NCBI GenBank assembly: GCA_002269645.1 | Contig: NIVC01004878.1 | Span: 1 to 32,575, forward strand | Direction of reading: 5' to 3' | Source of the DNA: Macrostomum lignano | Taxonomy: Eukaryota | DNA: 32,575 nucleotides | Shown here: in pieces, positions 1 through 23,177 of the stretch | How positions within the stretch are numbered: the stretch's first letter is position 1 | Layout: each line of letters opens with the position of its first letter | Translations under genes and position numbers: made by a program | The notes under the pieces: generated by a model | What the model saw: the letters and a program-made list of their open reading frames with translations, nothing else | Told to the model about the DNA's origin: nothing | Database searches by the model: none

Positions 1-480
1 ATGTTCTTAGTCAAATTTTATAAATGTATTGCAAAATATCAAAAATGAAAATGTTATATAGACTTTTACCTTTTAGTTTCTTTTCTATATGTCAAAAATC
101 CTGTCGTTACGACCATAAGTGTCATTTAAGGTTTAATAGCATCTATACTAATGATGATATCTATATGAAACTCTATAAATATATTCTGGACAAAATAATC
201 TTTCATTTAAAATATTGGTTTAGTATATTCTATTATTAGATTTCATTTTATAAGTAAAAATAACCTGTCATGTTACGACCATGCTTATATGGAATGAGCC
301 ATAGTCTATAGGGTACAGGCTACAGTGCAGTTTAGTATTACAGTCTGCAATGCTACATAAGTGAATAAGTGAATGATAAATCAATGGGAAAGAAAGTGAA
401 GGCAGAAAAAAGGGAAGAGAAATGAAGTATTTCCATTTTTCAATAAGCACAAGCACGCAAAGTGTGCTACCCTGCAGTCC

Positions 481-839
481 TTTTTTATTAGAGGCAGGGG
501 GGTTGTGTGCACCCTAGCGCACTTTAAGTGACATGGGCACACAACTGGCAAGAGGCATTACTGCCCATTCTGCCAACTCCCTTGAGCAGGCATACAAGCG
601 CGCGGATATGTATGCAGGCACACACTCACATAGGAGTATACAGCGGCCCTAACTTTATATTATTGTTAGGCATGTACACTTCACTGCACCTTGGGGGGTT
701 GGCTCTCAAGGCCCTTTTTTGCACGAGCAGAGCCAAGCAGAGATTCCAATTCAGCCCTAAATTAATGTGACTGCACTTGGAATCGAGCCTAGGTGGCTGG
801 CACACCAGAGTAGCTGCGCTACCACTGGGCTACGCCCCC
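481..839 (-). mobile_element. tRNA-derived SINE, apparently full length (about 360 bp), copy 1
   Basis: On the - strand: Pol III A box TAGCCCAGTGG (822-832) and B box GGCTCGATTCC (779-789) at tRNA-like spacing (43 nt start to start), a degenerate acceptor stem, and an A-rich end TAATAAAAAA (481-490). The body aligns with 22846-23080 in the opposite orientation. Confidence 0.7.
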
Positions 840-2526
840 TCCCCCAGTCCTTCAGTGTGGTGGTACAAGTAGATAGGTAAGTTGCAAATCTGGAAAAAAC
901 TAAGTTGCACCGGATGGGTGAAATTTTGAGGTTGGGCATGTATGGATAGAGGCAAAGCTAAAAGAGAAAGGGGTGGCAAATCAATTGTTACTTAGTACAT
1001 TGAAAGCCATTGGGAGCTATTGAAAGCTATAAGAAAGAAATTGAAGTTCTGCGTAAGGAATGTGAGCACCTTCAAAAATAAAAGGCAAGGAAGCCCAGCA
1101 AGTTAATAGAGGAAGTGCTAAAGTAGAAGGCACATGAGCTGTCAATGGCTATGTTGCTGTGACCCTTGTAAGCAAGCTGCCAAAAATCCCAAAAGAACTG
1201 ACATTTTTTAAAGTGTTGCTTAGGGTTAGGACTAAACTAGCTTGTGTTTCTACTTTGTGACTTTATTTTTTGTGAAAATACAAGACAACCAAAACAAAAA
1301 ACAGCCAAAAAAATTCAAATTAAAATTTTGTGGAAAGGAAAATTGGTATTTGCTCTTCTTTGTGCTTTTTTCATTTTTATAGCACATAGAAAGTAGAATA
1401 TTCAAGTGGTGGCTTTTTATCTAGTTGTACATACAATATACCTATATATGAACCTCTAGAAACTGAGGCGCAAAATTTTTAAGCAGGTGCAAAAAGTTGC
1501 ACTATGTCACTCCAAATACTGGATATAAGGATAGACAAAAAGAGAGTATTAGTTATTAATAAACTAGATATCCATTAACTTCCTTGATGATTGTCCCAAA
1601 GTTGAACCAGCAAAAATGAGAATAAATAAAAAAGAATAAAAAGTTAAAAACAGTATAGTATCATATCTATGTTTTCTCTTTCAAAAAATTAATTAAAAAG
1701 TAAAAACAGAGAACATGGCTAATGATAGCATAATGTTAAATTTGCGTGTTGAAAGTGGGAGACTGAGCTTTAATGCCCAGAGCCTCAAGGATCTTAAGCT
1801 TGTAGCTAGATAAGTTTTAATTAAGAATTTAAGAGTTCTTCAGGCCTATAATTTTAATATTCTAAGAGTTAAATATGAGTGAGTATTCTAAAAGATAAGT
1901 TTGTTGACTGACTTAGTATTCTCTATGTAGGAGATGCTTTGATAAACAGCAGTTAAAGCAAAATGGTAGATTTTTTATGAAAAGTACATTTTCCTAATTA
2001 TAGCCAAGGTGTATTGCCTATAATGTACCTAATTTATTTAGACATTATATTTACTATAAATATTATATCATATTTTATCAAAATGTAACTTGCATTATTC
2101 CATAATTACAAGCATAATTTTTTAATGATTTTTGAAAGCTTAATGGTTTGTTGGTATCTATGTGATCAATTAGAGAAAAATAAGTAGACTAATTATTTTT
2201 AAAATAGATTTAAAATTTAATTTTAAAGTAGGCAGCTATACCCATATGAAATAAAGACCACAAATGATAAGCAGTCCAGCTTTTCGCAAAAATGGGAGTA
2301 TCTGATTTCAATTTCAGCACTATTATGTGAGCATAAATTTTTATAATAATGCCAAGTTATATTATTTCTAATAGTTTGGGATCTAAGATTCCACTTAAAA
2401 TAACTATATTGGAAAGTTCAAACTGTTTTTAGTAATTTTGTATAAAACCTTGTCTTCAATAATTTACTTGCTTGCTTTGAATTCAAATTGTTTTCTCTTC
2501 ATGATATTTAGCTAAATTATAAAAAT

Positions 2527-2705
2527 ATGACTACTGTTGACAAGACCACTGTCAAGTCAGATAGTGACTGGAAGCAAGTACTCACACCTGAGCAATATCA
2601 TGTCACACGTGAGAAAGGAACTGAGGCTCCTTTCACTGGAAAGTTTGATAAATTCTTCAAAGATGGCACTTATTCGTGTGTTTGCTGCAAGACTCCACTA
2701 TTTCG
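2527..2705 (+). CDS. msrB: Methionine-R-sulfoxide reductase B (MsrB/SelR family), coding exon 1
   Basis: Encodes MTTVDK...WKQVLTPEQYHVTREKGTEAPFTGKF...GTYSCVCCKTPLF, the MsrB N-terminal half with the first Zn CxxC. Donor CG|GTATGT at 2705/2706 (phase 2). Confidence 0.93.
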
Positions 2706-3216
2706 GTATGTTTATAATGTCATAGCTTTTTTACTACCCTTACCTACATGCCAGATCGTTTTATAATGCTTCTAGTGGTTACTTTTCTTGGTAGTAACAG
2801 TTAAACTTATTTTGTAAGTAATTTGTTCCACATTGTCCAGCTTCTGTACTGGTTAGTGAATAGTAGGATGCAAGGTAAATTAAATTAATTAATTAAATTA
2901 TTTTGTTAATTTTTTCTAGCTCTTGGTCAGTGAATCTAAGTTTTTTTAGAGTAAAAATTGATTCAAAACTTCAAAGAATAAAATAAGGCTAAAATCTAAA
3001 GTACAGAACAAAGTGCATAATGCCTGATAGTGAGAAGGTTTAGCCTGCTATACACCATGTCAGAGTATACGCCTGCATATGCTTATGCTCAAGGACTTAA
3101 GAGTCAGTGGAATGAGTAGGTATAACTGCTCACTTTCTCGCTGGCTGAGTTGACTGTCGACCTGCCCTTGATTTGTGACAGCCCTTCCCTTACTGCTAGC
3201 AAAGACTTACCCGATC

Positions 3217-3750
3217 ACTGACTGACTCACTGACTTACCCAATGACTGACTGACTGACTGACTGACTGACTGACTGACTGACTGACTGACTGACTGACTG
3301 ACTGACTGACTGACTGACTGACTGACTGACTGACTGACTGACTGACTGATTAATGACTGACTGACTGACTGACTGACTGACTGACTGACTGACTGACTGA
3401 TTAATGACTGACCGACTGACTGACTGACTGACTGACTGACTGACTGACTGACTGACTGACTAACTGACAATGTCTGACTGACTGACTGACTGACTGACTG
3501 ACTGACTGACTGACTGACTGACTGACTGATTGATGACTGACTGACTGACTGACTGACTGACTGACTGACTGACTGACTGACTGACTGACTGACTGACAAT
3601 GTCTGACTGACTGACTGACTGACTGACTGACTGACTGACTGACTGACTGACTGATTGATGACTGTCTGTCTGACTGACTGACTGACTGACTGACTGACTG
3701 ACTGACAATGACTGACTGACAGACTCACTCACACTCATTAACTAACTAAC
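3217..3750 (+). repeat. (GACT)n tetranucleotide microsatellite, about 530 bp, in the MsrB intron
   Basis: Visible GACT run with occasional GATTAAT/GACAAT interruptions, ending in ACTAACTAAC 25 nt before the acceptor. Confidence 0.97.
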
Positions 3751-3775
3751 CGGCCACCCTGCTCACCCCCTTCAG

Positions 3776-4046
3776 CTCTGAGTACAAGTACAACTCCGGC
3801 TGCGGCTGGCCGGCATTTTTCAAAGCGGATGACGCCGAGGCGAGAATCGTTCGCCATCCGGACGACAGCATCCCTGGCCGGCCGCGCGTTGAAGTTCTGT
3901 GCCGCTCCTGCGGCGCCCACCTCGGCCACGTGTTCCAGGACGGGCCGCAGCCGACTGGTGAGCGCTACTGCATCAACTCAGCCTGTTTGAACTTCGCCTC
4001 CGCTGACGGGCGATCTGCGAGAGCGGCTGAGTGCGCCTCTGCTTAA
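3776..4046 (+). CDS. msrB: MsrB coding exon 2 (spliced protein 149 aa)
   Basis: Acceptor CCCCCTTCAG|3776 in matching phase. Encodes [14 protein letters not shown]...[32 protein letters not shown]...ECASA, then TAA at 4044-4046. Contains the SGCGWP motif, the second CxxC and the catalytic RYCINS (Cys codon TGC at 3969-3971). Missed by the ORF track because it has no start codon. Confidence 0.95.
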
Positions 4047-4128
4047 CTGGCTCTTCTGGGCACCTCGAGAACCGAAACTGAACTTGCATAGTCAAATCAA
4101 GTTGATTGCTTTGCATGAGAATGAGACC

Positions 4129-4836
4129 ATGAGAATCTTCCCAGGTGATCCTTCTGAGAATCGTCCCATATACTGCTCTATATCGTCCCATATATTCCTA
4201 TGAGAATCGTCACAGATTATCCCCATGAGAATCGTCCCAGATTATCCCTATGAGAATCGTCCCAGATTATCCCCATGAGAATCGTCCCAGATTATCCCTA
4301 TGAGAATCGTCCCAGATTATCTCCATGAGAATCGTCCCAGATTATCCCTATGAGAATCGTCCCAGATTATCCCCATGAGAATCGTCCCAGATTATCCCCA
4401 TGAGAATCTGCCCAGATTATCTCCATGAGAATCGTCCCAGATTATCCCCATGAGAATCGTCCCAGATTATCCCCATGAGAATCGTCCCAGATTATCCCCA
4501 TGAGAATCGTCCCAGATTATCCCCATGAGAATCGTCCCAGATTATCCCCATGAGAATCGTCCCAGATTATCCCTATGAGAATCGTCCCAGATTATCCCTA
4601 TGAGAATTGTCCCAGATTATCCCTATGAGAATCGTCCCAGATTATCCCCATGAGAATCGTCCCAGATTATCCCCATGAGAATTGTCCCAGATTATCCCCA
4701 TGAGAATTGTCCCAGATTATCCCCATGAGAATTGTCCCAGATTATCCCCATGAGAATCGTCCCAGATTATCCCCATGAGAATTGTCCCAGATTATCTCTC
4801 TAAGATTATTCCCGGATTATCCCCCATTAGAATCGC
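4129..4836. repeat. 25-bp minisatellite ATGAGAATCGTCCCAGATTATCCCC, about 24 regular copies plus degenerate edge copies
   Basis: Period of 25 (TGAGA at 4201, 4226, 4251). Starts less than 100 bp after the MsrB stop codon. Confidence 0.96.
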
Positions 4837-5600
4837 TCATATCAGTTTTAGTGACTTTAGTAAGTTTACATGCTTGATTTTTCCCAATTTTGGCCATATG
4901 AATATTTCTTGCAATTTTTACTGAATTTACTCCTGTTTTGAGATTTTGCAACAAAATGAATTGCTCATTTTATTCGCCTCAATTTTCTAAGTGCTAGCAA
5001 AGTGTTTGCACTAAAATGTACTGTTCAATCATTAATTGCCCGTCTCATGCAGTCGGGTTTTAATTTTGCGAGAAATAAAAATATTTTCTCTCTTATTAAT
5101 TTTTGCAATGATTTTTTTACTCTAAAGTTTGTTTTTCAAGGTTTAGTTAGCTTGGGTTCTTTGTCACATCTACCAAACTAACGTTATTCTGTTTAATCTC
5201 TGGGAATCTGCCTCTCCCCTATGTTATCAGTGATGACCCAAAACAAAGAAATGACGCACATCGTAGGGGATACCCGACAGGCCACATCACAGATATGACA
5301 CTCCAAAAAAATATATCCGACCAGAATATTTCGAAATATGACACATAAAAGTTTCGCAAAAAACTATAAATTTTGCATTACATGCTACTAATAGTAGAAA
5401 TGCGAAAATAATTCGATCGCAGCTCCAAAGGGTTTCAAATAAATCGCATTAGACACAAGTCCAGCTATTTTAGTTATATATATTATTTACTTGCAAATTT
5501 TATAATTATATTTTATGTGCATACGAATTTTAGTTATAATTAATAAGTTTTCAAATATTATATTATCTTTACATGTTTCACATGTTAGAAAATAGTTATA

Positions 5601-5750
5601 TTAGCATGTTGAAATAGTGCATTGGTAGGCAGTCACCGAATGGGCAAATGTACTCCTGCCGGCATGCGACTTGGGCCGCTCAGCTGGGCCGGGCGGCTGC
5701 TGGGCTGCGGTGGGCGGCTGCTCAGCTGATCCGGGCTGTGACGCATCGGT
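5601..5750 (-). CDS. Putative exon 2 of an unrecognised small protein (Pro/Gln/Ala-rich: TDASQPGSAEQPPTAAQQPPGPAERPKSHAGRSTFAHSVTAYQCTISTC*)
   Basis: GC-rich island in AT-rich DNA with acceptor AATTTCTCTACTCAG (AG at 5752-5751). Open in phase 0 to TAA at 5603-5601. The 3' end is uncertain because of a weak GTGACT donor at 5636. Confidence 0.55.
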   Translation of the reverse strand, partial: TDASQPGSAEQPPTAAQQPPGPAERPKSHAGRSTFAHSVTAYQCTISTC

Positions 5751-5765
5751 CTGAGTAGAGAAATT

Positions 5766-6816
5766 GCAGTTATTGGTAGAGACAGGGCAGAATGGTAGAG
5801 ACAGGGCAGTTATTGGTAGAGACAGGGCAGTTATTGGTAGAGACAGGGCAGAATGGTAGAGACAGGGCAGTTATTGGTAGAGAAAGGGCAGAATGGTAGA
5901 GACAGGGCAGAATGGTAGAGACAGGGCAGAATGGTAGAGACAGGGCAGAATGGTAGAGATAGGGCAGAATGGTAGAGACAGGGCAGTTATTGGTAGAGAC
6001 AGGGCAGAATGGTAGAGACAGGGCAGTTATTGGTAGAGAAAGGGCAGAATGGTAGAGACAGGGCAGAATGGTAGAGACAGGGCAGAATGGTAGAGACAGG
6101 GCAGAATGGTAGAGAAAGGGCAGAATGGTAGAGACAGGGCAGAATGGTAGAGACAGGGCAGTATGGTAGAAACAGGGCAGTATGGTAGAGACAGGGCAGA
6201 ATGGTAGAGACAGGGCAGAATGGTAGAGACAGGGCAGAATGGTAGAGACAGGGCAGAATGGTAGAGACAGGGCAGAATGGTAGAGACAGGGCAGAATGGT
6301 AGAGAAAGGGCAGAATGGTAGAGACAGGGCAGTATGGTAGAGACAGGGCAGAATGGTAGAGACAGGGCAGAATGGTAGAGACAGGGCAGAATGGTAGAGA
6401 CAGGGCAGAATGGTAGAGACAGGGCAGAATGGTAGAGAAAGGGCAGAATGGTAGAGACAGGGCAGAATGGTAGAGACAGGGTAGAATGGTAGAGACAGGG
6501 CAGAATGGTAGAGACAGGGTAGAATGGTAGAGACAGGGCAGAATGGTAGAGACAGGGTAGAATGGTAGAGACAGGGCAGAATGGTAGAGAAAGGGTAGAA
6601 TGGTAGAGACAGGGCAGAATGGTAGAGACAGGGCAGAATGGTAGAGAAAGGGTAGAATGGTAGAGACAGGGCAGAATGGTAGAGAAAGGGCAGAATGGTA
6701 GAGACAGGGCAGAATGGTAGAGACAGGGTAGAATGGTAGAGACAGGGCAGAATGGTAGAGACAGGGTAGAATGGTAGAGACAGGGTAGAATGGTAGAGAC
6801 AGGGCAGTTATTGGTA
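5766..6816. repeat. 19-bp minisatellite GGTAGAGACAGGGCAGAAT (with a 21-bp GTTATT variant), about 55 copies; fills the intron of the putative - strand gene
   Basis: Period of 19. Explains the 270-aa STILPCLYH repeat ORF. Confidence 0.96.
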
Positions 6817-6843
6817 AAAATATTGCTCTTCACCTTCACTTAC

Positions 6844-6966
6844 CATTAACTGGAATCGATCAGACGCGGCGAGCTCTTTCTCAAACGACTTTTGCCGCTT
6901 AGCGACGTCATAGCATTTGCCTTTGCGGCTTATCAGCTGTTTTATGAACTCCAATTGTTTGGACAT
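6844..6966 (-). CDS. Putative exon 1 of an unrecognised small protein (MSKQLEFIKQLISRKGKCYDVAKRQKSFEKELAASDRFQLM)
   Basis: ATG at 6966 with an in-frame TAA 30 nt upstream. 41 open codons end exactly at a perfect donor ATG|GTAAGT (6844/6843), phase 0, matching the 5750 exon. Confidence 0.6.
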
Positions 6967-7286
6967 TTGGGTTAATTTATTGAAAAAATGAAATTAATTG
7001 ACAAATAGAAATCTGGCTTTTTGAAAGGCCAACTGAAGTCCCATTTTATATGAAGCGGCAGTTTGACATCAACAAGTTCACTCTAATTTTCATTGGTTCG
7101 GAATGGGGTGGTCAAAATATTTCACGTTCATAGTACGTGTCAAATCCACTATGCTTTTAGACTCGAAGGGGTGGACTGCTTCATTTCAGTAGTGACTCAT
7201 TTTGACACCAAATTACTTTGATTCAAAATGAAACATGCGCATTAACCAGCATGAAACATACATTAGGTACAATATGCCCCACTCAC

Positions 7287-7340
7287 ATTCACAGCCTCAT
7301 TCACAGCCTCATTCACTGCCTCATTCACAGCCTCACAGCC
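7287..7340. repeat. Short 12-bp tandem repeat ATTCACAGCCTC, 4 copies plus a partial one
   Basis: Four consecutive units, one with an A>T change. Confidence 0.85.
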
Positions 7341-8134
7341 AGACTCACTGATCGACCCTAATCCAGTTTGGGTTTCGAATACTCAGTTATTTCTGCATTT
7401 TCAATTCATTGAGTAGCTCTGTGAGATCCGCTGCTGTCAATATACAGTGGGCAGTGGATAACAAATAAATGACACACAATGAATTGGATAGGAATTAAAT
7501 GAATGATGCAAAATAGAAATTCGAGAAATAGATTAAATATGCAAGAAAAAGACGTATATGCTCAAAAATTAGGATGAAGTCAGTCATCAACAAATCAAAG
7601 AGTAGATAAAAATTCATAGGTTGCAATCTTAACTCCACTTTGGTGTCTAATTAAAGTTTACAATTTTACATATTTGGAACTGCTTGACACTATTCTTTAC
7701 GATAATGGCGCAATCATAAGTTTGGTGCAACAAATTTGCTTAGATAGGTGTCTTCCACCATGAACCACCCATCACTGTCACCGAGCATTGCGCAATCTTG
7801 AGCATACCCAGAGCACGTATTTGCTTTTAAGCAATCGTGAGAACTGCGATTCTTATCTTTACTCAAAATCCAGCTACAGTGGAAAGATCGAGAAAAGCGC
7901 GAAACACACCTCCAAACAAACCGCTGTGCATAATACAAAACAATATATAGATAAAAAGTGGAACGCTCACAGCAGGTGACCAAACCAAAAGTAAAAGCAA
8001 AGCCCAATTGTATTTTGATAAAAAGCCATTACTAAAGAAGCTGGCGAAATATTTCTGAGCTAACCTGTCAATATCAAGTATAAGTTAAAATGTACGAGCG
8101 CAGTAAATTCAAACATGGATTTAAACTATAGCGG

Positions 8135-11100
8135 CGCTGTCAATATATAAATTAAATGGAGAGCTTAGAAATGACACTCAATGGGGCTGATATACACAGG
8201 TGCAAAGATGACGCAGAGCCCGCTACTCTCAGCATCTCTAACTAGCCCTGTCGCTGTCAATATATAGAATTAAATGGAGAGCTTAGAAATGACACTCAAT
8301 GGGGCTGATATACACAGGTGCAAAGATGACGCAGAGCCCGCTACTCTCAGCATCTCTAACTAGCCCTGTCGCTGTCAATATATAGAATTAAATGGAGAGC
8401 TTAGAAATGACACTCAATGGGGCTGATATACACAGGTGCAAAGATGACGCAGAGCCCGCTACTCTCAGCATCTCTAACTAGCCCTGTCGCTGTCAATATA
8501 TAGAATTAAATGGAGAGCTTAGAAATGACACTCAATGGGGCTGATATACACAGGTGCAAAGATGACGCAGAGCCCGCTACTCTCAGCATCTCTAACTAGC
8601 CCTGTCGCTGTCAATATATAGAATTAAATGGAGAGCTTAGAAATGACACTCAATGGGGCTGATATACACAGGTGCAAAGATGACGCAGAGCCCGCTACTC
8701 TCAGCATCTCTAACTAGCCCTGTCGCTGTCAATATATAGAATTAAATGGAGAGCTTAGAAATGACACTCAATGGGGCTGATATACACAGGTGCAAAGATG
8801 ACGCAGAGCCCGCTACTCTCAGCATCTCTAACTAGCCCTGTCGCTGTCAATATATAGAATTAAATGGAGAGCTTAGAAATGACACTCAATGGGGCTGATA
8901 TACACAGGTGCAAAGATGACGCAGAGCCCGCTACTCTCAGCATCTCTAACTAGCCCTGTCGCTGTCAATATATAGAATTAAATGGAGAGCTTAGAAATGA
9001 CACTCAATGGGGCTGATATACACAGGTGCAAAGATGACGCAGAGCCCGCTACTCTCAGCATCTCTAACTAGCCCTGTCGCTGTCAATATATAGAATTAAA
9101 TGGAGAGCTTAGAAATGACACTCAATGGGGCTGATATACACAGGTGCAAAGATGACGCAGAGCCCGCTACTCTCAGCATCTCTAACTAGCCCTGTCGCTG
9201 TCAATATATAGAATTAAATGGAGAGCTTAGAAATGACACTCAATGGGGCTGATATACACAGGTGCAAAGATGACGCAGAGCCCGCTACTCTCAGCATCTC
9301 TAACTAGCCCTGTCGCTGTCAATATATAGAATTAAATGGAGAGCTTAGAAATGACACTCAATGGGGCTGATATACACAGGTGCAAAGATGACGCAGAGCC
9401 CGCTACTCTCAGCATCTCTAACTAGCCCTGTCGCTGTCAATATATAGAATTAAATGGAGAGCTTAGAAATGACACTCAATGGGGCTGATATACACAGGTG
9501 CAAAGATGACGCAGAGCCCGCTACTCTCAGCATCTCTAACTAGCCCTGTCGCTGTCAATATATAGAATTAAATGGAGAGCTTAGAAATGACACTCAATGG
9601 GGCTGATATACACAGGTGCAAAGATGACGCAGAGCCCGCTACTCTCAGCATCTCTAACTAGCCCTGTCGCTGTCAATATATAGAATTAAATGGAGAGCTT
9701 AGAAATGACACTCAATGGGGCTGATATACACAGGTGCAAAGATGACGCAGAGCCCGCTACTCTCAGCATCTCTAACTAGCCCTGTCGCTGTCAATATATA
9801 GAATTAAATGGAGAGCTTAGAAATGACACTCAATGGGGCTGATATACACAGGTGCAAAGATGACGCAGAGCCCGCTACTCTCAGCATCTCTAACTAGCCC
9901 TGTCGCTGTCAATATATAGAATTAAATGGAGAGCTTAGAAATGACACTCAATGGGGCTGATATACACAGGTGCAAAGATGACGCAGAGCCCGCTACTCTC
10001 AGCATCTCTAACTAGCCCTGTCGCTGTCAATATATAGAATTAAATGGAGAGCTTAGAAATGACACTCAATGGGGCTGATATACACAGGTGCAAAGATGAC
10101 GCAGAGCCCGCTACTCTCAGCATCTCTAACTAGCCCTGTCGCTGTCAATATATAGAATTAAATGGAGAGCTTAGAAATGACACTCAATGGGGCTGATATA
10201 CACAGGTGCAAAGATGACGCAGAGCCCGCTACTCTCAGCATCTCTAACTAGCCCTGTCGCTGTCAATATATAGAATTAAATGGAGAGCTTAGAAATGACA
10301 CTCAATGGGGCTGATATACACAGGTGCAAAGATGACGCAGAGCCCGCTACTCTCAGCATCTCTAACTAGCCCTGTCGCTGTCAATATATAGAATTAAATG
10401 GAGAGCTTAGAAATGACACTCAATGGGGCTGATATACACAGGTGCAAAGATGACGCAGAGCCCGCTACTCTCAGCATCTCTAACTAGCCCTGTCGCTGTC
10501 AATATATAGAATTAAATGGAGAGCTTAGAAATGACACTCAATGGGGCTGATATACACAGGTGCAAAGATGACGCAGAGCCCGCTACTCTCAGCATCTCTA
10601 ACTAGCCCTGTCGCTGTCAATATATAGAATTAAATGGAGAGCTTAGAAATGACACTCAATGGGGCTGATATACACAGGTGCAAAGATGACGCAGAGCCCG
10701 CTACTCTCAGCATCTCTAACTAGCCCTGTCGCTGTCAATATATAGAATTAAATGGAGAGCTTAGAAATGACACTCAATGGGGCTGATATACACAGGTGCA
10801 AAGATGACGCAGAGCCCGCTACTCTCAGCATCTCTAACTAGCCCTGTCGCTGTCAATATATAGAATTAAATGGAGAGCTTAGAAATGACACTCAATGGGG
10901 CTGATATACACAGGTGCAAAGATGACGCAGAGCCCGCTACTCTCAGCATCTCTAACTAGCCCTGTCGCTGTCAATATATAGAATTAAATGGAGAGCTTAG
11001 AAATGACACTCAATGGGGCTGATATACACAGGTGCAAAGATGACGCAGAGCCCGCTACTCTCAGCATCTCTAACTAGCCCTGTCGCTGTCAATATATAGA

Positions 11101-14100
11101 ATTAAATGGAGAGCTTAGAAATGACACTCAATGGGGCTGATATACACAGGTGCAAAGATGACGCAGAGCCCGCTACTCTCAGCATCTCTAACTAGCCCTG
11201 TCGCTGTCAATATATAGAATTAAATGGAGAGCTTAGAAATGACACTCAATGGGGCTGATATACACAGGTGCAAAGATGACGCAGAGCCCGCTACTCTCAG
11301 CATCTCTAACTAGCCCTGTCGCTGTCAATATATAGAATTAAATGGAGAGCTTAGAAATGACACTCAATGGGGCTGATATACACAGGTGCAAAGATGACGC
11401 AGAGCCCGCTACTCTCAGCATCTCTAACTAGCCCTGTCGCTGTCAATATATAGAATTAAATGGAGAGCTTAGAAATGACACTCAATGGGGCTGATATACA
11501 CAGGTGCAAAGATGACGCAGAGCCCGCTACTCTCAGCATCTCTAACTAGCCCTGTCGCTGTCAATATATAGAATTAAATGGAGAGCTTAGAAATGACACT
11601 CAATGGGGCTGATATACACAGGTGCAAAGATGACGCAGAGCCCGCTACTCTCAGCATCTCTAACTAGCCCTGTCGCTGTCAATATATAGAATTAAATGGA
11701 GAGCTTAGAAATGACACTCAATGGGGCTGATATACACAGGTGCAAAGATGACGCAGAGCCCGCTACTCTCAGCATCTCTAACTAGCCCTGTCGCTGTCAA
11801 TATATAGAATTAAATGGAGAGCTTAGAAATGACACTCAATGGGGCTGATATACACAGGTGCAAAGATGACGCAGAGCCCGCTACTCTCAGCATCTCTAAC
11901 TAGCCCTGTCGCTGTCAATATATAGAATTAAATGGAGAGCTTAGAAATGACACTCAATGGGGCTGATATACACAGGTGCAAAGATGACGCAGAGCCCGCT
12001 ACTCTCAGCATCTCTAACTAGCCCTGTCGCTGTCAATATATAGAATTAAATGGAGAGCTTAGAAATGACACTCAATGGGGCTGATATACACAGGTGCAAA
12101 GATGACGCAGAGCCCGCTACTCTCAGCATCTCTAACTAGCCCTGTCGCTGTCAATATATAGAATTAAATGGAGAGCTTAGAAATGACACTCAATGGGGCT
12201 GATATACACAGGTGCAAAGATGACGCAGAGCCCGCTACTCTCAGCATCTCTAACTAGCCCTGTCGCTGTCAATATATAGAATTAAATGGAGAGCTTAGAA
12301 ATGACACTCAATGGGGCTGATATACACAGGTGCAAAGATGACGCAGAGCCCGCTACTCTCAGCATCTCTAACTAGCCCTGTCGCTGTCAATATATAGAAT
12401 TAAATGGAGAGCTTAGAAATGACACTCAATGGGGCTGATATACACAGGTGCAAAGATGACGCAGAGCCCGCTACTCTCAGCATCTCTAACTAGCCCTGTC
12501 GCTGTCAATATATAGAATTAAATGGAGAGCTTAGAAATGACACTCAATGGGGCTGATATACACAGGTGCAAAGATGACGCAGAGCCCGCTACTCTCAGCA
12601 TCTCTAACTAGCCCTGTCGCTGTCAATATATAGAATTAAATGGAGAGCTTAGAAATGACACTCAATGGGGCTGATATACACAGGTGCAAAGATGACGCAG
12701 AGCCCGCTACTCTCAGCATCTCTAACTAGCCCTGTCGCTGTCAATATATAGAATTAAATGGAGAGCTTAGAAATGACACTCAATGGGGCTGATATACACA
12801 GGTGCAAAGATGACGCAGAGCCCGCTACTCTCAGCATCTCTAACTAGCCCTGTCGCTGTCAATATATAGAATTAAATGGAGAGCTTAGAAATGACACTCA
12901 ATGGGGCTGATATACACAGGTGCAAAGATGACGCAGAGCCCGCTACTCTCAGCATCTCTAACTAGCCCTGTCGCTGTCAATATATAGAATTAAATGGAGA
13001 GCTTAGAAATGACACTCAATGGGGCTGATATACACAGGTGCAAAGATGACGCAGAGCCCGCTACTCTCAGCATCTCTAACTAGCCCTGTCGCTGTCAATA
13101 TATAGAATTAAATGGAGAGCTTAGAAATGACACTCAATGGGGCTGATATACACAGGTGCAAAGATGACGCAGAGCCCGCTACTCTCAGCATCTCTAACTA
13201 GCCCTGTCGCTGTCAATATATAGAATTAAATGGAGAGCTTAGAAATGACACTCAATGGGGCTGATATACACAGGTGCAAAGATGACGCAGAGCCCGCTAC
13301 TCTCAGCATCTCTAACTAGCCCTGTCGCTGTCAATATATAGAATTAAATGGAGAGCTTAGAAATGACACTCAATGGGGCTGATATACACAGGTGCAAAGA
13401 TGACGCAGAGCCCGCTACTCTCAGCATCTCTAACTAGCCCTGTCGCTGTCAATATATAGAATTAAATGGAGAGCTTAGAAATGACACTCAATGGGGCTGA
13501 TATACACAGGTGCAAAGATGACGCAGAGCCCGCTACTCTCAGCATCTCTAACTAGCCCTGTCGCTGTCAATATATAGAATTAAATGGAGAGCTTAGAAAT
13601 GACACTCAATGGGGCTGATATACACAGGTGCAAAGATGACGCAGAGCCCGCTACTCTCAGCATCTCTAACTAGCCCTGTCGCTGTCAATATATAGAATTA
13701 AATGGAGAGCTTAGAAATGACACTCAATGGGGCTGATATACACAGGTGCAAAGATGACGCAGAGCCCGCTACTCTCAGCATCTCTAACTAGCCCTGTCGC
13801 TGTCAATATATAGAATTAAATGGAGAGCTTAGAAATGACACTCAATGGGGCTGATATACACAGGTGCAAAGATGACGCAGAGCCCGCTACTCTCAGCATC
13901 TCTAACTAGCCCTGTCGCTGTCAATATATAGAATTAAATGGAGAGCTTAGAAATGACACTCAATGGGGCTGATATACACAGGTGCAAAGATGACGCAGAG
14001 CCCGCTACTCTCAGCATCTCTAACTAGCCCTGTCGCTGTCAATATATAGAATTAAATGGAGAGCTTAGAAATGACACTCAATGGGGCTGATATACACAGG

Positions 14101-17100
14101 TGCAAAGATGACGCAGAGCCCGCTACTCTCAGCATCTCTAACTAGCCCTGTCGCTGTCAATATATAGAATTAAATGGAGAGCTTAGAAATGACACTCAAT
14201 GGGGCTGATATACACAGGTGCAAAGATGACGCAGAGCCCGCTACTCTCAGCATCTCTAACTAGCCCTGTCGCTGTCAATATATAGAATTAAATGGAGAGC
14301 TTAGAAATGACACTCAATGGGGCTGATATACACAGGTGCAAAGATGACGCAGAGCCCGCTACTCTCAGCATCTCTAACTAGCCCTGTCGCTGTCAATATA
14401 TAGAATTAAATGGAGAGCTTAGAAATGACACTCAATGGGGCTGATATACACAGGTGCAAAGATGACGCAGAGCCCGCTACTCTCAGCATCTCTAACTAGC
14501 CCTGTCGCTGTCAATATATAGAATTAAATGGAGAGCTTAGAAATGACACTCAATGGGGCTGATATACACAGGTGCAAAGATGACGCAGAGCCCGCTACTC
14601 TCAGCATCTCTAACTAGCCCTGTCGCTGTCAATATATAGAATTAAATGGAGAGCTTAGAAATGACACTCAATGGGGCTGATATACACAGGTGCAAAGATG
14701 ACGCAGAGCCCGCTACTCTCAGCATCTCTAACTAGCCCTGTCGCTGTCAATATATAGAATTAAATGGAGAGCTTAGAAATGACACTCAATGGGGCTGATA
14801 TACACAGGTGCAAAGATGACGCAGAGCCCGCTACTCTCAGCATCTCTAACTAGCCCTGTCGCTGTCAATATATAGAATTAAATGGAGAGCTTAGAAATGA
14901 CACTCAATGGGGCTGATATACACAGGTGCAAAGATGACGCAGAGCCCGCTACTCTCAGCATCTCTAACTAGCCCTGTCGCTGTCAATATATAGAATTAAA
15001 TGGAGAGCTTAGAAATGACACTCAATGGGGCTGATATACACAGGTGCAAAGATGACGCAGAGCCCGCTACTCTCAGCATCTCTAACTAGCCCTGTCGCTG
15101 TCAATATATAGAATTAAATGGAGAGCTTAGAAATGACACTCAATGGGGCTGATATACACAGGTGCAAAGATGACGCAGAGCCCGCTACTCTCAGCATCTC
15201 TAACTAGCCCTGTCGCTGTCAATATATAGAATTAAATGGAGAGCTTAGAAATGACACTCAATGGGGCTGATATACACAGGTGCAAAGATGACGCAGAGCC
15301 CGCTACTCTCAGCATCTCTAACTAGCCCTGTCGCTGTCAATATATAGAATTAAATGGAGAGCTTAGAAATGACACTCAATGGGGCTGATATACACAGGTG
15401 CAAAGATGACGCAGAGCCCGCTACTCTCAGCATCTCTAACTAGCCCTGTCGCTGTCAATATATAGAATTAAATGGAGAGCTTAGAAATGACACTCAATGG
15501 GGCTGATATACACAGGTGCAAAGATGACGCAGAGCCCGCTACTCTCAGCATCTCTAACTAGCCCTGTCGCTGTCAATATATAGAATTAAATGGAGAGCTT
15601 AGAAATGACACTCAATGGGGCTGATATACACAGGTGCAAAGATGACGCAGAGCCCGCTACTCTCAGCATCTCTAACTAGCCCTGTCGCTGTCAATATATA
15701 GAATTAAATGGAGAGCTTAGAAATGACACTCAATGGGGCTGATATACACAGGTGCAAAGATGACGCAGAGCCCGCTACTCTCAGCATCTCTAACTAGCCC
15801 TGTCGCTGTCAATATATAGAATTAAATGGAGAGCTTAGAAATGACACTCAATGGGGCTGATATACACAGGTGCAAAGATGACGCAGAGCCCGCTACTCTC
15901 AGCATCTCTAACTAGCCCTGTCGCTGTCAATATATAGAATTAAATGGAGAGCTTAGAAATGACACTCAATGGGGCTGATATACACAGGTGCAAAGATGAC
16001 GCAGAGCCCGCTACTCTCAGCATCTCTAACTAGCCCTGTCGCTGTCAATATATAGAATTAAATGGAGAGCTTAGAAATGACACTCAATGGGGCTGATATA
16101 CACAGGTGCAAAGATGACGCAGAGCCCGCTACTCTCAGCATCTCTAACTAGCCCTGTCGCTGTCAATATATAGAATTAAATGGAGAGCTTAGAAATGACA
16201 CTCAATGGGGCTGATATACACAGGTGCAAAGATGACGCAGAGCCCGCTACTCTCAGCATCTCTAACTAGCCCTGTCGCTGTCAATATATAGAATTAAATG
16301 GAGAGCTTAGAAATGACACTCAATGGGGCTGATATACACAGGTGCAAAGATGACGCAGAGCCCGCTACTCTCAGCATCTCTAACTAGCCCTGTCGCTGTC
16401 AATATATAGAATTAAATGGAGAGCTTAGAAATGACACTCAATGGGGCTGATATACACAGGTGCAAAGATGACGCAGAGCCCGCTACTCTCAGCATCTCTA
16501 ACTAGCCCTGTCGCTGTCAATATATAGAATTAAATGGAGAGCTTAGAAATGACACTCAATGGGGCTGATATACACAGGTGCAAAGATGACGCAGAGCCCG
16601 CTACTCTCAGCATCTCTAACTAGCCCTGTCGCTGTCAATATATAGAATTAAATGGAGAGCTTAGAAATGACACTCAATGGGGCTGATATACACAGGTGCA
16701 AAGATGACGCAGAGCCCGCTACTCTCAGCATCTCTAACTAGCCCTGTCGCTGTCAATATATAGAATTAAATGGAGAGCTTAGAAATGACACTCAATGGGG
16801 CTGATATACACAGGTGCAAAGATGACGCAGAGCCCGCTACTCTCAGCATCTCTAACTAGCCCTGTCGCTGTCAATATATAGAATTAAATGGAGAGCTTAG
16901 AAATGACACTCAATGGGGCTGATATACACAGGTGCAAAGATGACGCAGAGCCCGCTACTCTCAGCATCTCTAACTAGCCCTGTCGCTGTCAATATATAGA
17001 ATTAAATGGAGAGCTTAGAAATGACACTCAATGGGGCTGATATACACAGGTGCAAAGATGACGCAGAGCCCGCTACTCTCAGCATCTCTAACTAGCCCTG

Positions 17101-19652
17101 TCGCTGTCAATATATAGAATTAAATGGAGAGCTTAGAAATGACACTCAATGGGGCTGATATACACAGGTGCAAAGATGACGCAGAGCCCGCTACTCTCAG
17201 CATCTCTAACTAGCCCTGTCGCTGTCAATATATAGAATTAAATGGAGAGCTTAGAAATGACACTCAATGGGGCTGATATACACAGGTGCAAAGATGACGC
17301 AGAGCCCGCTACTCTCAGCATCTCTAACTAGCCCTGTCGCTGTCAATATATAGAATTAAATGGAGAGCTTAGAAATGACACTCAATGGGGCTGATATACA
17401 CAGGTGCAAAGATGACGCAGAGCCCGCTACTCTCAGCATCTCTAACTAGCCCTGTCGCTGTCAATATATAGAATTAAATGGAGAGCTTAGAAATGACACT
17501 CAATGGGGCTGATATACACAGGTGCAAAGATGACGCAGAGCCCGCTACTCTCAGCATCTCTAACTAGCCCTGTCGCTGTCAATATATAGAATTAAATGGA
17601 GAGCTTAGAAATGACACTCAATGGGGCTGATATACACAGGTGCAAAGATGACGCAGAGCCCGCTACTCTCAGCATCTCTAACTAGCCCTGTCGCTGTCAA
17701 TATATAGAATTAAATGGAGAGCTTAGAAATGACACTCAATGGGGCTGATATACACAGGTGCAAAGATGACGCAGAGCCCGCTACTCTCAGCATCTCTAAC
17801 TAGCCCTGTCGCTGTCAATATATAGAATTAAATGGAGAGCTTAGAAATGACACTCAATGGGGCTGATATACACAGGTGCAAAGATGACGCAGAGCCCGCT
17901 ACTCTCAGCATCTCTAACTAGCCCTGTCGCTGTCAATATATAGAATTAAATGGAGAGCTTAGAAATGACACTCAATGGGGCTGATATACACAGGTGCAAA
18001 GATGACGCAGAGCCCGCTACTCTCAGCATCTCTAACTAGCCCTGTCGCTGTCAATATATAGAATTAAATGGAGAGCTTAGAAATGACACTCAATGGGGCT
18101 GATATACACAGGTGCAAAGATGACGCAGAGCCCGCTACTCTCAGCATCTCTAACTAGCCCTGTCGCTGTCAATATATAGAATTAAATGGAGAGCTTAGAA
18201 ATGACACTCAATGGGGCTGATATACACAGGTGCAAAGATGACGCAGAGCCCGCTACTCTCAGCATCTCTAACTAGCCCTGTCGCTGTCAATATATAGAAT
18301 TAAATGGAGAGCTTAGAAATGACACTCAATGGGGCTGATATACACAGGTGCAAAGATGACGCAGAGCCCGCTACTCTCAGCATCTCTAACTAGCCCTGTC
18401 GCTGTCAATATATAGAATTAAATGGAGAGCTTAGAAATGACACTCAATGGGGCTGATATACACAGGTGCAAAGATGACGCAGAGCCCGCTACTCTCAGCA
18501 TCTCTAACTAGCCCTGTCGCTGTCAATATATAGAATTAAATGGAGAGCTTAGAAATGACACTCAATGGGGCTGATATACACAGGTGCAAAGATGACGCAG
18601 AGCCCGCTACTCTCAGCATCTCTAACTAGCCCTGTCGCTGTCAATATATAGAATTAAATGGAGAGCTTAGAAATGACACTCAATGGGGCTGATATACACA
18701 GGTGCAAAGATGACGCAGAGCCCGCTACTCTCAGCATCTCTAACTAGCCCTGTCGCTGTCAATATATAGAATTAAATGGAGAGCTTAGAAATGACACTCA
18801 ATGGGGCTGATATACACAGGTGCAAAGATGACGCAGAGCCCGCTACTCTCAGCATCTCTAACTAGCCCTGTCGCTGTCAATATATAGAATTAAATGGAGA
18901 GCTTAGAAATGACACTCAATGGGGCTGATATACACAGGTGCAAAGATGACGCAGAGCCCGCTACTCTCAGCATCTCTAACTAGCCCTGTCGCTGTCAATA
19001 TATAGAATTAAATGGAGAGCTTAGAAATGACACTCAATGGGGCTGATATACACAGGTGCAAAGATGACGCAGAGCCCGCTACTCTCAGCATCTCTAACTA
19101 GCCCTGTCGCTGTCAATATATAGAATTAAATGGAGAGCTTAGAAATGACACTCAATGGGGCTGATATACACAGGTGCAAAGATGACGCAGAGCCCGCTAC
19201 TCTCAGCATCTCTAACTAGCCCTGTCGCTGTCAATATATAGAATTAAATGGAGAGCTTAGAAATGACACTCAATGGGGCTGATATACACAGGTGCAAAGA
19301 TGACGCAGAGCCCGCTACTCTCAGCATCTCTAACTAGCCCTGTCGCTGTCAATATATAGAATTAAATGGAGAGCTTAGAAATGACACTCAATGGGGCTGA
19401 TATACACAGGTGCAAAGATGACGCAGAGCCCGCTACTCTCAGCATCTCTAACTAGCCCTGTCGCTGTCAATATATAGAATTAAATGGAGAGCTTAGAAAT
19501 GACACTCAATGGGGCTGATATACACAGGTGCAAAGATGACGCAGAGCCCGCTACACTCAGCATCTCTAACTAGCCCTGTCGCTGTCAATATATAGAATTA
19601 AATGGAGAGCTTAGAAATGACACTCAATGGGGCTGATATACGCAGGTGCAAA
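8135..19652. repeat. 118-bp satellite array, about 97.6 near-identical copies (11.5 kb)
   Basis: Unit: CGCTGTCAATATATAGAATTAAATGGAGAGCTTAGAAATGACACTCAATGGGGCTGATATACACAGGTGCAAAGATGACGCAGAGCCCGCTACTCTCAGCATCTCTAACTAGCCCTGT. Lines recur every 3540 nt = 30 x 118 (8221, 11761, 15301, 18841). The only variants I saw are in the edge copies (about 8150, 19555, 19642). Confidence 0.98.
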
Positions 19653-19963
19653 TATTGTTATTTACATAGTTATTTGAATAACTATAACTTCAAATAGTTT
19701 TTCGAAGGATTGTAGTTTTGTCTCTTGAAGTCTAATATGTGTCTTTGTTTTTCTCCTTAAAGTAGTGTATCTGATTTTAGCTTTATTTTTGTTGGGATAG
19801 GGAAAATCTTGTGTTGTTTTATTGGTTTAAGTTTCGTCATTTTTTATATGGGGTATATTTAGAATATATCCTTTTTTGAAACGGTAATTTTTTGCGCGTC
19901 ATTTTTAGTTACTTAGAGGATATATTCGATTGTGTCATTTCTACATTCTGCGTCATCCAAACG

Positions 19964-21410
19964 CCACTACATGAATCTGCCTCTCCACTACATGAATCTG
20001 CCTCTCCACTACATGAATCTGCCTCTCCACTACATGAATCTGCCTCTCCACTACATGAATCTGCCTCTCCACTACATGAATCTGCCTCTCCACTACATGA
20101 ATCTGCCTCTCCACTACATGAATCTGCCTCTCCACTACATGAATCTGCCTCTCCACTACATGAATCTGCCTCTCCACTACATGAATCTGCCTCTCCACTA
20201 CATGAATCTGCCTCTCCACTACATGAATCTGCCTCTCCACTACATGAATCTGCCTCTCCACTACATGAATCTGCCTCTCCACTACATGAATCTGCCTCTC
20301 CACTACATGAATCTGCCTCTCCACTACATGAATCTGCCTCTCCACTACATGAATCTGCCCCTCCACTACATGAATCTGCCTCTCCACTACATGAATCTGC
20401 CTCTCCACTACATGAATCTGCCTCTCCACTACATGAATCTGCCTCTCCACTACATGAATCTGCCTCTCCACTACATGAATCTGCCTCTCCACTACATGAA
20501 TCTGCCTCTCCACTACATGAATCTGCCTCTCCACTACATGAATCTGCCTCTCCACTACATGAATCTGCCCCTCCACTACATGAATCTGCCTCTCCACTAC
20601 ATGAATCTGCCCCTCCACTACATGAATCTGCCCCTCCACTACATGAATCTGCTTCTCCACTACATGAATCTGCTTCTCCACTACATGAATCTGCTTCTCC
20701 ACTACATGAATCTGCTTCTCCACTACATGAATCTGCCCCTCCACTACATGAATCTGCTTCTCCACTACATGAATCTGCTTCTCCACTACATGAATCTGCC
20801 CCTCCACTACATGAATCTGCCCCTCCACTACATGAATCTGCCCCTCCACTACATGAATCTGCTTCTCCACTACATGAATCTGCCTCTCCACTAAATGAAT
20901 CTGCCTCTCCACTATATGAATCTGCCCCTCCACTACATGAATCTGCCCCTCCACTACATGAATCTGCTTCTCCACTACATGAATCTGCCCCTCCACTACA
21001 TGAATCTGCCCCTCCACTACATGAATCTGCTTCTCCACTACATGAATCTGCTTCTCCACTACATGAATCTGCCTCTCCACTACATGAATCTGCTTCTCCA
21101 CTACATGAATCTGCCTCTCCACTATATGAATCTGCCCCTCCACTACATGAATCTGCTTCTCCACTACATGAATCTGCCTCTCCACTATATGAATCTGCCC
21201 CTCCACTACATGAATCTGCCTCTCCACTACATGAATCTGCCTCTCCACTTCGTGAATCTGCCTCTCCACTTCGTGAGTCTGCCTCTCCACTTCGTGAATC
21301 TGCCTCTCCACTAAATAAATCTGCCTCTCCACTACATCAATCTGCCTCTCCACTACATCAATCTGCCTCTCCACTACATCAATCTGCCTCTCCACTACAT
21401 GAATCTGCAT
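19964..21410. repeat. 21-bp minisatellite CCACTACATGAATCTGCCTCT, about 69 copies
   Basis: Period of 21, with variants accumulating toward the right end. Source of the ASPLHES, YMNLPLH and VERQIHV ORFs. Confidence 0.97.
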
Positions 21411-22525: not shown

Positions 22526-22845
22526 GTAGCTTCCCAGGAGATTCTTGAGTGGGTCTCTCGCTTTTAACTCTTGGCTATTCCTGCCGTTCTTAAATAACTC
22601 CTTCCGGAAATTTTTGCAACAGACCCGTACTACGAGTAATTTCTATCTAAGTAACCTTACTTTGCAACAAACACACGAATGAAGTTATCGAACAAAGAAG
22701 CGCCGGCTAGATGTTATGTTATAATAAATCAATCGCTTCAACATAAAGTGCGTTCCCTGAGGCTGCAATTATGGGAATAGTCTAATTCTGCTTAATAAAT
22801 TAAAGCAATTGCTTGGCTCAAAATGGCCACTTTCGAGCAGAATCA

Positions 22846-23080: not shown

Positions 23081-23177
23081 TACATTTAAATGTGCTGAGA
23101 TCTCCCTGTTCTCACTAACTTTACCAGAGTACAAGCAGTCCTTCAATAAACAGCCTATACACTCCCCTCTGGCGCAG

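Follow-up and report, generated by a model that had tools for sequence, protein, structure and literature searches.

The window analysed was the whole of contig NIVC01004878.1 (32,575 nt) of the Macrostomum lignano Mlig_3_7 assembly. Its minus strand carries a small two-exon gene that is missing from the contig annotation, in which MsrB is the only gene called between 1 and 14046. The features of the small gene are listed below from 5' to 3'; the motifs, codons, exons and intron were read directly.

7092..7096, minus: CCAAT box of a putative core promoter, some 45 nt before the TATA box
7044..7050, minus: TATAAAA box, with a putative role in the same promoter
6966-6964, minus: start codon ATG
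6844..6966, minus: coding part of exon 1, 41 codons, MSKQLEFIKQLISRKGKCYDVAKRQKSFEKELAASDRFQLM
6843-6838, minus: splice donor GTAAGT
5751..6843, minus: intron of 1,093 nt with GTAAGT donor and CAG acceptor
5774..6807, minus: 19-bp minisatellite, 53.9 copies of the unit CTGCCCTGTCTCTACCATT on the transcribed strand (Tandem Repeats Finder)
at 5751, minus: splice acceptor, ...tttctctactCAG
5601..5750, minus: coding part of exon 2, phase 0, 49 codons and TAA, with a P/Q/A-rich tail
5631..5636, minus: GTGACT within exon 2, immediately following codon 79 (...FAHS); a weak 5' splice site that serves as the donor in seven ML2 protein models
5216..5600, minus: AT-rich tail with 29% GC, running from the stop codon to where a shared block ends, as delimited by sequence comparison

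The start codon has A at -3 and an in-frame TAA ten codons 5' of it, at 6996-6994. The reading frame is kept in phase across the junction, giving a spliced product of 90 aa in which the tryptic peptide across the junction is FQLMTDASQPGSAEQPPTAAQQPPGPAER. Exon 2 has a GC content of 62.7% versus 45.5% for exon 1; frames 0 and 1 of exon 2 are both open (two of the three frames), and its middle (5674-5736) consists of a decayed tandem repeat of 21 bp, which encodes the P/Q/A tail. All checked coordinates agree with the two-exon model that had been proposed in a sequence-only reading (ATG at 6966, upstream in-frame stop, 41 codons, 1,093-nt intron), and direct reading confirmed its GTAAGT donor, pyrimidine-rich CAG acceptor and phase-compatible GC-rich second exon; the product of about 90 aa is exactly the peptide written there. 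The same reading had put the minisatellite at about 96% of the intron; the 19-bp array stands, with 93% matches, and its share is 94.6% by Tandem Repeats Finder. The intron is 76% pyrimidine. From +17 to the acceptor it is free of AG, a stretch of approximately 1,075 nt that leaves the CAG at 5751 as the first acceptor which can be used.

From the promoter motifs, transcription is predicted to start near 7020, which would leave a 5' UTR roughly 55 nt long that contains no upstream ATG. At its 3' end the gene is convergent with MsrB (plus strand, 2527-4046), as had been noted. The AATAAA motifs given for the two genes are present at +5074 and -4974; the overlap of 3' UTRs drawn from them is an extrapolation from the motifs, and the one at 4974 falls outside the shared block. 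Contig NIVC01004878.1 probably also lacks a call for an adenosine deaminase gene; a homology search with exon 1 of that gene at an E cut-off of 1e-50, which was too strict, gave no match.

Annotated copies of the gene

The product has 100% identity, at 100% coverage, with PAA52179.1 and PAA67728.1, hypothetical proteins of 90 aa from genes BOX15_Mlig001263g3 and BOX15_Mlig018228g1 (also UniRef100_A0A1I8GFA1), annotated on contigs NIVC01003287.1 and NIVC01001458.1 (loci L001 and L002). At these loci the DNA of both exons stands at matching positions with 100% identity; across the three copies, identity is 100% in the downstream 384 nt and 97.8-99.7% in the 1,168 nt upstream. The window locus is an unannotated third copy of the BOX15_Mlig001263g3 / Mlig018228g1 gene. 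It shares with the two annotated genes the product, exon DNA, donor, acceptor, minisatellite intron and flanking DNA, and differs from them in contig, neighbours, intron length and the missing annotation. The intron is 1,093 nt long here versus 1,283 and 1,243 nt in the annotated copies, the 19-bp minisatellite differing in length between copies, and the intron ends and the AG-free property are identical in all three. The claim of a hidden, unknown gene is not supported: the identical protein is deposited twice in GenBank, so the gene was already known and contributes little that is new. What is missing is the gene call on this contig, which is present at two sister copies, and the practical gain is a correction to the annotation. 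The BOX15_Mlig001263g3 and Mlig018228g1 identifiers were not found in the M. lignano full texts and supplements searched.

An alignment of donor, acceptor and ORF by chance in repeat-rich DNA, with no splicing at all, is highly improbable. The contig is 62% tandem repeat as a whole, its copy is unannotated, the spliced product is recorded on the two annotated NCBI contigs only, and an exact look-up of the unspliced 52-aa ORF found no called gene on any contig in the assembly collection, all of which would suit such an artefact. Against it, the splice model equals the transcript-derived GenBank CDS, and the same spliced product is annotated at two identical copies, so the model is not a chance construct. 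Near-ideal splice signals, the same in all three copies, are kept with introns of differing length, and the exon 1-exon 2 junction is used alike in independent models of ML2, an older M. lignano proteome. The identical CDS was annotated twice by a pipeline starting from RNA-seq assemblies (StringTie, TACO), a de novo transcriptome and TransDecoder ORFs (PMC5730564). From the way in which this annotation was made, we infer that the gene is transcribed and spliced. An ORF of 90 aa falls under TransDecoder's usual default, and the annotation is for this reason weak evidence of coding. That a reader without tools correctly rebuilt a eukaryotic splice model from raw sequence is useful in itself.

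Coding capacity of the predicted transcript

No relative outside M. lignano was accepted for the 90-aa product among 5.8 billion and 1.84 billion (representative) proteins, in which coverage of Macrostomum congeners may be thin. A Pfam search of the product with E up to 10 gave no family, the names returned (DUF6919, LAT, VPS11_C, Herpes_US8A) being sub-threshold noise, and a PDB sequence search gave no relative. UniRef family names attached to the sequences (Caprin-1_dimer, MamL-1, Peroxin-14, DM domain, protein kinase, PI3K/PI4K) have no Pfam support and vary among near-identical sequences, and were rejected. Also rejected, as a repeat-inflated chance match, was P0134, an ankyrin-repeat protein of 1,138 aa encoded on an ENA metagenome contig: in five tandem repeats it aligns over stretches of 54-56 residues with 31-35% identity, each scoring only 27-32 bits, and its library E-value of 2.6e-5 arises because the scores of the five repeats are summed. 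These searches support, at the level of sequence, a product confined to the M. lignano lineage. Of the earlier description as an orphan or lineage-restricted gene, the restriction to M. lignano matches stood, and a single copy at a fixed locus did not, the gene being multi-copy on a block described below.

The AlphaFold model is a single helix (mean pLDDT 57) at residues 3-42 (pLDDT about 70-77), with disorder at 43-74, in agreement with the helical N-terminus and disordered tail proposed from the sequence. The exon 1 peptide is predicted with moderate confidence to form a long, basic, amphipathic helix.

There was no signal of purifying selection, the three copies being equally identical in the exons, the non-repeat intron ends and the downstream 384 nt; selection is not measurable from three copies because coding and adjacent non-coding DNA are equally identical. 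The ML2 models, which come from an error-prone assembly, include more divergent sequence. Of the 13 models that contain exon 1, 11 have an identical exon 1 peptide, the exceptions being P0007, which lacks the first six residues, and P0133, which is frame-shifted in exon 1. P0004 is one of the 11 although it is a divergent copy, with only 58% identity left in its exon 2. The frame of exon 2 is changed in P0003, P0004, P0005 and P0007; these changes and the one in P0133 may be indel errors of the ML2 assembly or real decay.

The RNA could be spliced and be non-coding or spuriously translated, with the ORF a by-product of an AT-rich exon joined to a stop-poor, GC-rich repeat, an explanation that we consider credible though somewhat improbable. 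It would account for an exon 2 that is built on a 21-bp repeat and open in two of three frames, for ML2 copies that yield ORFs although their exon 2 frame differs, and for the failure to find a homologue beyond the species, a domain or a structural relative; unspliced ORFs of 40-60 codons are also frequent, with 32 in the first 8.2 kb of the window. It accounts less well for an ATG that is the first in the predicted transcript and in good context, an ORF that traverses the junction in phase, an exon 1 peptide that is the same in most models, the divergent P0004 included, and the helix modelled for that exon.

We consider it moderately probable that the locus is a third copy of a transcribed and spliced gene with a lineage-restricted product of at most 90 residues, carried on a dispersed satellite block. 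In this preferred reading the CCAAT and TATA boxes would direct a short transcript from near 7020, and its first ATG would open the ORF. The GTAAGT donor would be paired with the CAG at 5751 as the first acceptor met by the spliceosome, and the mRNA would yield a polypeptide of no more than 90 residues, consisting of the exon 1 helix and a disordered P/Q/A tail translated from the decayed 21-bp tandem repeat. We read the gene as a young one, restricted to the species or genus, that was born on the block or is carried by it.

Young orphan or de novo genes with coding sequence from low-complexity or tandem-repeat DNA form the nearest class. The gene resembles them in being short, with few exons, no outside homologue, a disordered repeat-derived tail and paralogues that differ in frame and length. 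It differs in being multi-copy on a dispersed block instead of having arisen in place at a single locus, and an ancestral non-coding state would be conjectural for it. The architecture, with an orphan ORF, an AG-free minisatellite intron and a tail from a 21-bp repeat, all on a block dominated by a satellite, is of more interest than the gene.

The internal donor and fused protein models

The GTGACT at 5636 had been named as a possible donor to a further exon, and seven ML2 protein models (P0006 and P0128-P0133) do leave the ORF there: residues 1-79 are common to them, and they then continue into six unrelated sequences. The gene could accordingly be a promoter and leader-exon cassette in which this donor joins 79 codons to flanking sequence in chimeric RNAs, the 90-aa ORF being the form that is not spliced further. 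We judge this unlikely. Besides the ML2 models, it would fit the 384-nt tail of the block (5216..5600), in which variant hexamers and no canonical AATAAA or ATTAAA were found, the first canonical poly(A) signals sitting in the copy-specific flanks beyond the shared block. It would also fit the different transcript-cluster names of the two annotated copies, which have the same CDS and were clustered at 95% identity; the names hint that their transcripts reach different flanks. On the other side, the continuations resemble chained spurious predicted ORFs: they have no Pfam domains, even at 553-1,631 aa, and the 5-10 kb that follow the three copies contain no match to any of them. GTGACT is moreover a weak donor (C at +5), and the transcript-based Mlig_3_7 annotation gives the 90-aa form at both annotated copies.

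Denli et al. are said to have described, in 2015, human LINE-1 ORF0 as a short repeat ORF whose splice donors join it to exons further downstream. The likeness lies in a short lineage-specific ORF within a dispersed repeat, transcribed towards the flank, with an internal 5' splice site and gene models that fuse its N-terminal part to flanking sequence. In contrast to ORF0, the flatworm ORF has a carrier that cannot be recognised as a LINE and has no reverse transcriptase or poly(A) tail, the ORF is split by an intron, and the fusions are known only from predicted protein models.

The satellite block and its neighbourhoods

The gene lies in a satellite-rich block, and its presence on this block in several unrelated neighbourhoods is what is new here. 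The features that define the block are as follows.

5216..19963, no strand: gene-bearing block, 14,748 bp long, also present at L001 and L002 to the extent covered by their flanks
8135-19652, no strand: 118-bp satellite, 97.6 copies, a tandem repeat within the block
5204..5215, plus: GAATCTGCCTCT, a partial unit of a 21-bp minisatellite, separated by the block from the array of that repeat at 19964-21408

Read along the plus strand, the block opens with the tail and the gene; 1.17 kb of unique DNA come next, then the 118-bp satellite, and an AT-rich stretch of 311 nt closes it. The satellite makes up 78% of it, the non-satellite part is about 3.2 kb, and the gene is the only gene-like feature present. 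The comparable part is 97.8-100% identical on the three contigs. Similarity stops sharply at 5216/5217, beyond which the three flanks are unrelated: the neighbouring gene is MsrB in this window, L001 has one with RSE1-type beta-propeller domains, and L002 has zf-C2H2_jaz and DHHC genes. Comparison of the contig sequences thus showed dispersal of the gene-bearing block over at least three unrelated gene neighbourhoods, and the ML2 models imply six more downstream contexts.

In this window the block interrupts the 21-bp minisatellite in phase. The 12-mer at 5204-5215 is the sole copy outside the array, with 0.02 chance matches expected, and does not occur in the flanks of L001 or L002; joining 5215 to 19964 in a rebuilt empty site restored the array in phase (one locus). 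The far end of the block is likewise defined at one locus only.

Marks of a known transposition mechanism were sought at the ends and in the interior. A second copy of the 21-nt block terminus was found on neither strand with 3 mismatches allowed, so there are no terminal inverted repeats or LTRs. A subterminal inverted repeat is weak (25 of 32 positions, z of about 3) and was surpassed by the best of 300 shuffles, and inverted repeats near the gene are weak and AT-rich. No clear target-site duplication was seen at the one locus, with at most an ambiguous CC. The terminal motifs of piggyBac (CCC...GGG, TTAA target), Helitron (TC...CTRR) and LTR elements (TG...CA), compared by eye, do not fit the block termini. 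The non-satellite part of the block has no long ORF but a 270-aa frame through the minisatellite, and neither a 97-aa ORF at 7714-8007 nor the 90-aa product has a Pfam match. A transposase would not fit in the block, no transposase, reverse transcriptase or recombinase is encoded, and the block, if mobile, would therefore be non-autonomous. An Rfam scan of the entire window, with spliced-leader, 5S and snRNA models included, gave no family at threshold; thus no curated RNA family matches the 118-bp satellite or the locus. Satellites are not mentioned in the subgenome paper on M. lignano, the genome of which is recently duplicated.

Drosophila Helentron-derived DINE-type elements and Tetris are non-autonomous mobile elements with internal tandem arrays. 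The block resembles these in being dispersed and dominated by a homogeneous internal array, with a sharp shared terminus and no encoded means of its own transposition. It differs in having no Helitron termini (5'-TC ... CTRR-3', by eye), terminal inverted repeats or established target-site duplication, and both of its ends are visible at one locus only. It is distinctly doubtful that the block is an undescribed non-autonomous mobile unit, in which a satellite would be combined with a pol II promoter and an outward two-exon microprotein gene, and the internal donor would graft a 79-residue helical leader at each insertion site. If true, satellite dispersal, de novo coding sequence from tandem repeats and chimeric transcripts would be joined in one element. 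Should the block turn out to be mobile and its ORF to be translated, both the seeding of coding sequence by tandem repeats and the dispersal of satellites could be studied in one compact example. RNA interference is in use in M. lignano. Transgenesis exists for the species as well, so tests are feasible (PMC5730564).

Annotation and structure of the small gene

The 90-aa peptide spliced from the two-exon gene on the minus strand matched one protein cluster at 100% identity over its full length. The matching members are PAA52179.1 and PAA67728.1 (hypothetical proteins BOX15_Mlig001263g3 and BOX15_Mlig018228g1, Macrostomum lignano), and the annotated copies lie on NIVC01003287.1 (locus L001) and NIVC01001458.1 (locus L002), both in GCA_002269645.1. 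The DNA of both exons is identical in the window, L001, and L002. The gene, which the sequence-only reading had taken for a hidden and unknown one, is already known, an identical protein being present in GenBank, and it is absent only from the annotation of this contig; with three copies seen, it is not an orphan in the sense of a single-copy gene. The only gene called within 1-14046 of NIVC01004878.1 is MsrB, and the small gene is unannotated there, although two sister contigs of this assembly carry calls for it. The missing call may reflect a loss in the repeat filter of the annotation. The transcripts behind the GenBank annotation were assembled from RNA-seq in two ways, guided by the genome (StringTie and TACO) and de novo, and their ORFs were called using TransDecoder (PMC5730564). 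Since the annotation was built on RNA-seq, we infer that the exon 1-exon 2 junction has RNA support.

Features of the small gene
7096-7092, minus strand, CCAAT box of the predicted promoter
7050-7044, minus strand, TATAAAA box of the predicted promoter
6966-6844, minus strand, exon 1, ATG at 6966, 41 codons
6843-6838, minus strand, perfect GTAAGT donor directly after exon 1
6843-5751, minus strand, intron of 1,093 nt, ending in tttctctactCAG
5774-6807, within the intron, 19-bp minisatellite, 53.9 copies with 93% matches (Tandem Repeats Finder)
5750-5601, minus strand, exon 2, phase 0, 49 codons followed by TAA
5674-5736, inside exon 2, decayed 21-bp repeat

Every element that the sequence-only reading had listed for the gene was found where it had been placed, and its splice model, derived without any annotation, was correct. 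An in-frame TAA lies ten codons 5' of the ATG, and GC content is 45.5% in exon 1 versus 62.7% in exon 2. The minisatellite makes up 94.6% of the intron (Tandem Repeats Finder), and its unit on the transcribed strand, CTGCCCTGTCTCTACCATT, contains no AG, so that the CAG at 5751 is the first AG for ~1,075 nt; within the intron, AG occurs only at +4, +9, +15, and +17 and at the acceptor. Pyrimidines account for 76% of the intron. The AG-free minisatellite makes the splice plausible.

The satellite-bearing block and its flanks

Sequence shared by the window with L001 and L002 extends from a 118-bp satellite across the gene to 384 nt beyond the stop codon. Similarity stops abruptly at window position 5216 (against L001) and 5217 (against L002), and the three sequences downstream of this end are mutually unrelated.

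Neighbors past the block end
Window, MsrB, 2527-4046, plus strand, two exons
L001, a gene with RSE1-type beta-propeller domains
L002, zf-C2H2_jaz and DHHC genes, with a 373-aa ORF before them

Parts of the block in gene orientation, and the array beyond it
AT-rich end, 311 nt
118-bp satellite, window 8135-19652 (97.6 copies, 99% identity), L001 57-8853, L002 1-7261
Unique DNA, 1.17 kb, including the promoter
The small gene
Tail, 384 nt
Beyond the block, 19964-21408, 21-bp minisatellite, 68.8 copies, across the satellite from 5204-5215

The 21-bp minisatellite is split by the block, with one 12-nt partial unit stranded on the MsrB side. This 12-mer (5204-5215, GAATCTGCCTCT), just outside the block, is the last 12 nt of the 21-bp unit, and with 5215 joined to 19964 the 21-bp array is continuous and in phase. 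It has no other occurrence outside the array in the window, where 0.02 chance matches are expected, and was not found in the L001 and L002 flanks. From the stranded 12-mer and the in-phase join, it was concluded that the 14,748 bp from 5216 to 19963 were inserted as a discrete block, the far end of which is defined at one locus only (the window), with flanks compared to 10 kb.

The 118-bp satellite constitutes 78% of the block and 35% of the contig, flanks every copy of the gene seen (NIVC01001458.1 begins inside it), and matched no family in Rfam. No terminal inverted repeat of the block was found, its subterminal inverted repeat is weak (25/32 positions, z ~3, outscored by the best of 300 shuffles), no clear target-site duplication was present, and a transposase would not fit into the block. 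Either a non-autonomous element or a recombination-mediated duplication could account for it. That it is a mobile satellite unit carrying its own putative microprotein gene and an exported splice donor is quite improbable; the block and its outward-facing gene are nevertheless the part worth pursuing.

At L002, the 373-aa ORF (11063-12184, plus strand, NIVC01001458.1) lies 1.1 kb past the block end and matched the tyrosine-recombinase family PF00589 weakly, at E 0.0018 and short of the cut-off; it is similar to Crypton or DUF3504-type elements. A segment neighboring this ORF has short inverted copies at L002 10198-10790.

The predicted product and the internal donor

A word-indexed search of 5.8 billion proteins to E = 10 returned five matches, all from M. 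lignano. An exhaustive HMMER search of 1.84 billion representatives returned eight, seven of them M. lignano UniRef A0A1I8 entries, which derive from the earlier ML2 proteome. The remaining match, P0134, an ankyrin-repeat protein on a metagenome contig, aligned through five tandem repeats, each at 31-35% identity and 27-32 bits only, and was rejected as chance because its library E-value sums these weak repeats. With P0134 discounted, relatives were found in M. lignano only, in keeping with the lineage restriction proposed earlier. The product gave nothing above noise in Pfam and no match to PDB sequences. The basic helical N-terminus and disordered P/Q/A tail proposed from sequence agree with the single-sequence AlphaFold2 model, which predicts a helix at residues 3-42 (pLDDT ~70-77), followed by disorder (43-74) and a second helix, short and weak (75-87), with a mean pLDDT of 57. 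UniRef names for the near-identical M. lignano models P0001-P0007 and P0128-P0133 conflict among themselves (Caprin-1_dimer, MamL-1, Peroxin-14, DM domain, protein kinase, PI3K/PI4K, NPH3, TPR, integrase), and no Pfam match supports any, so protein names in this proteome are not to be trusted.

Evidence on protein coding falls on both sides. For coding, the ATG is the first downstream of the predicted transcription start and has A at -3, the ORF spans the junction in phase, and of the 13 models containing the exon 1 peptide, 11 have it in identical form (P0007 lacks the first six residues, and P0133 shifts frame); among these 11, P0004 falls to 58% identity in exon 2, with frame changes. Against coding, the exons are 100% identical across the three DNA copies, as are the non-repeat intron ends and the 384-nt tail, and upstream identity is 97.8-99.7% over 1,168 nt; coding and adjacent non-coding DNA are equally identical, leaving no divergence for measuring selection. 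Two of the three frames of exon 2 are also open; P0003, P0005, and P0007 finish the tail in frame +1, P0004 switches frame more than once, and the P0133 frameshift falls within exon 1. Fewer intact ORFs were obtained on ML2 than on Mlig_3_7 (PMC5730564), so some of these frameshifts may be assembly errors.

Seven ML2 models (P0006 and P0128-P0133) have residues 1-79 in common, ending ...FAHS just before the GT at 5636; beyond it they follow six unrelated sequences, the longest reaching 1,631 aa. The possible use of the GTGACT at 5636 as a donor to a further exon, raised by the sequence-only reading, matches the exit point of these seven models. Their continuations contain no Pfam domain, map nowhere in the 5-10 kb downstream of the three copies, and read like chained spurious ORFs. 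They were read as a sign that the module occurs in several further contexts, and no case for chimeric proteins was built on them. Transcripts that leave the block, with GTGACT splicing onward into the flank, are unlikely but kept in consideration by two observations. AATAAA and ATTAAA are both missing from the block tail, and canonical poly(A) signals first appear in copy-specific flanks (window 5197, 5064, and 4974; L002 +695 and +884 from the stop), with none within 1.6 kb in L001. In addition, the two annotated copies share the same CDS, yet fall in different transcript clusters despite clustering at 95% identity.

Other genes and repeats on the contig

The spliced product of the convergent MsrB is 100% identical to BOX15_Mlig034290g1 (NIVC01004878.1). 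Within the MsrB intron is an (ACTG)n array (3217-3729, 128 copies), and the MsrB exons have 42.5% and 63.8% GC, a low-then-high pattern also seen in the small gene. The candidate AATAAA signals from which the sequence-only reading had proposed overlapping 3' UTRs for MsrB and the small gene are present at +5074 and -4974, the latter outside the shared block; if used, the +5074 signal would give MsrB a 3' UTR of ~1 kb containing a 709-bp array of a 25-bp minisatellite.

Further genes on the contig
22072-23776, plus strand, adenosine deaminase gene, two ORF pieces matching Pfam PF00962 (profile positions 2-136 and 212-329)
27520-31522, plus strand, innexin gene, at least four exons, Pfam PF00876

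At a cut-off of E <= 1e-50, the first 152 residues of the adenosine deaminase had no protein match, and the contig may therefore lack a call for this gene as well. Minisatellites of 24, 46, 32/59, and 24 bp take up most of the innexin introns, which suggests that introns filled with repeats are usual on this contig and that the small gene is no exception in this respect. Simple and tandem repeats make up 15% genome-wide (PMC5730564). On this contig the share of tandem repeats is about 62%, spread over 18 distinct arrays whose periods range from 2 to 118 bp, and the contig terminates within a 23-bp array (31711-32546).
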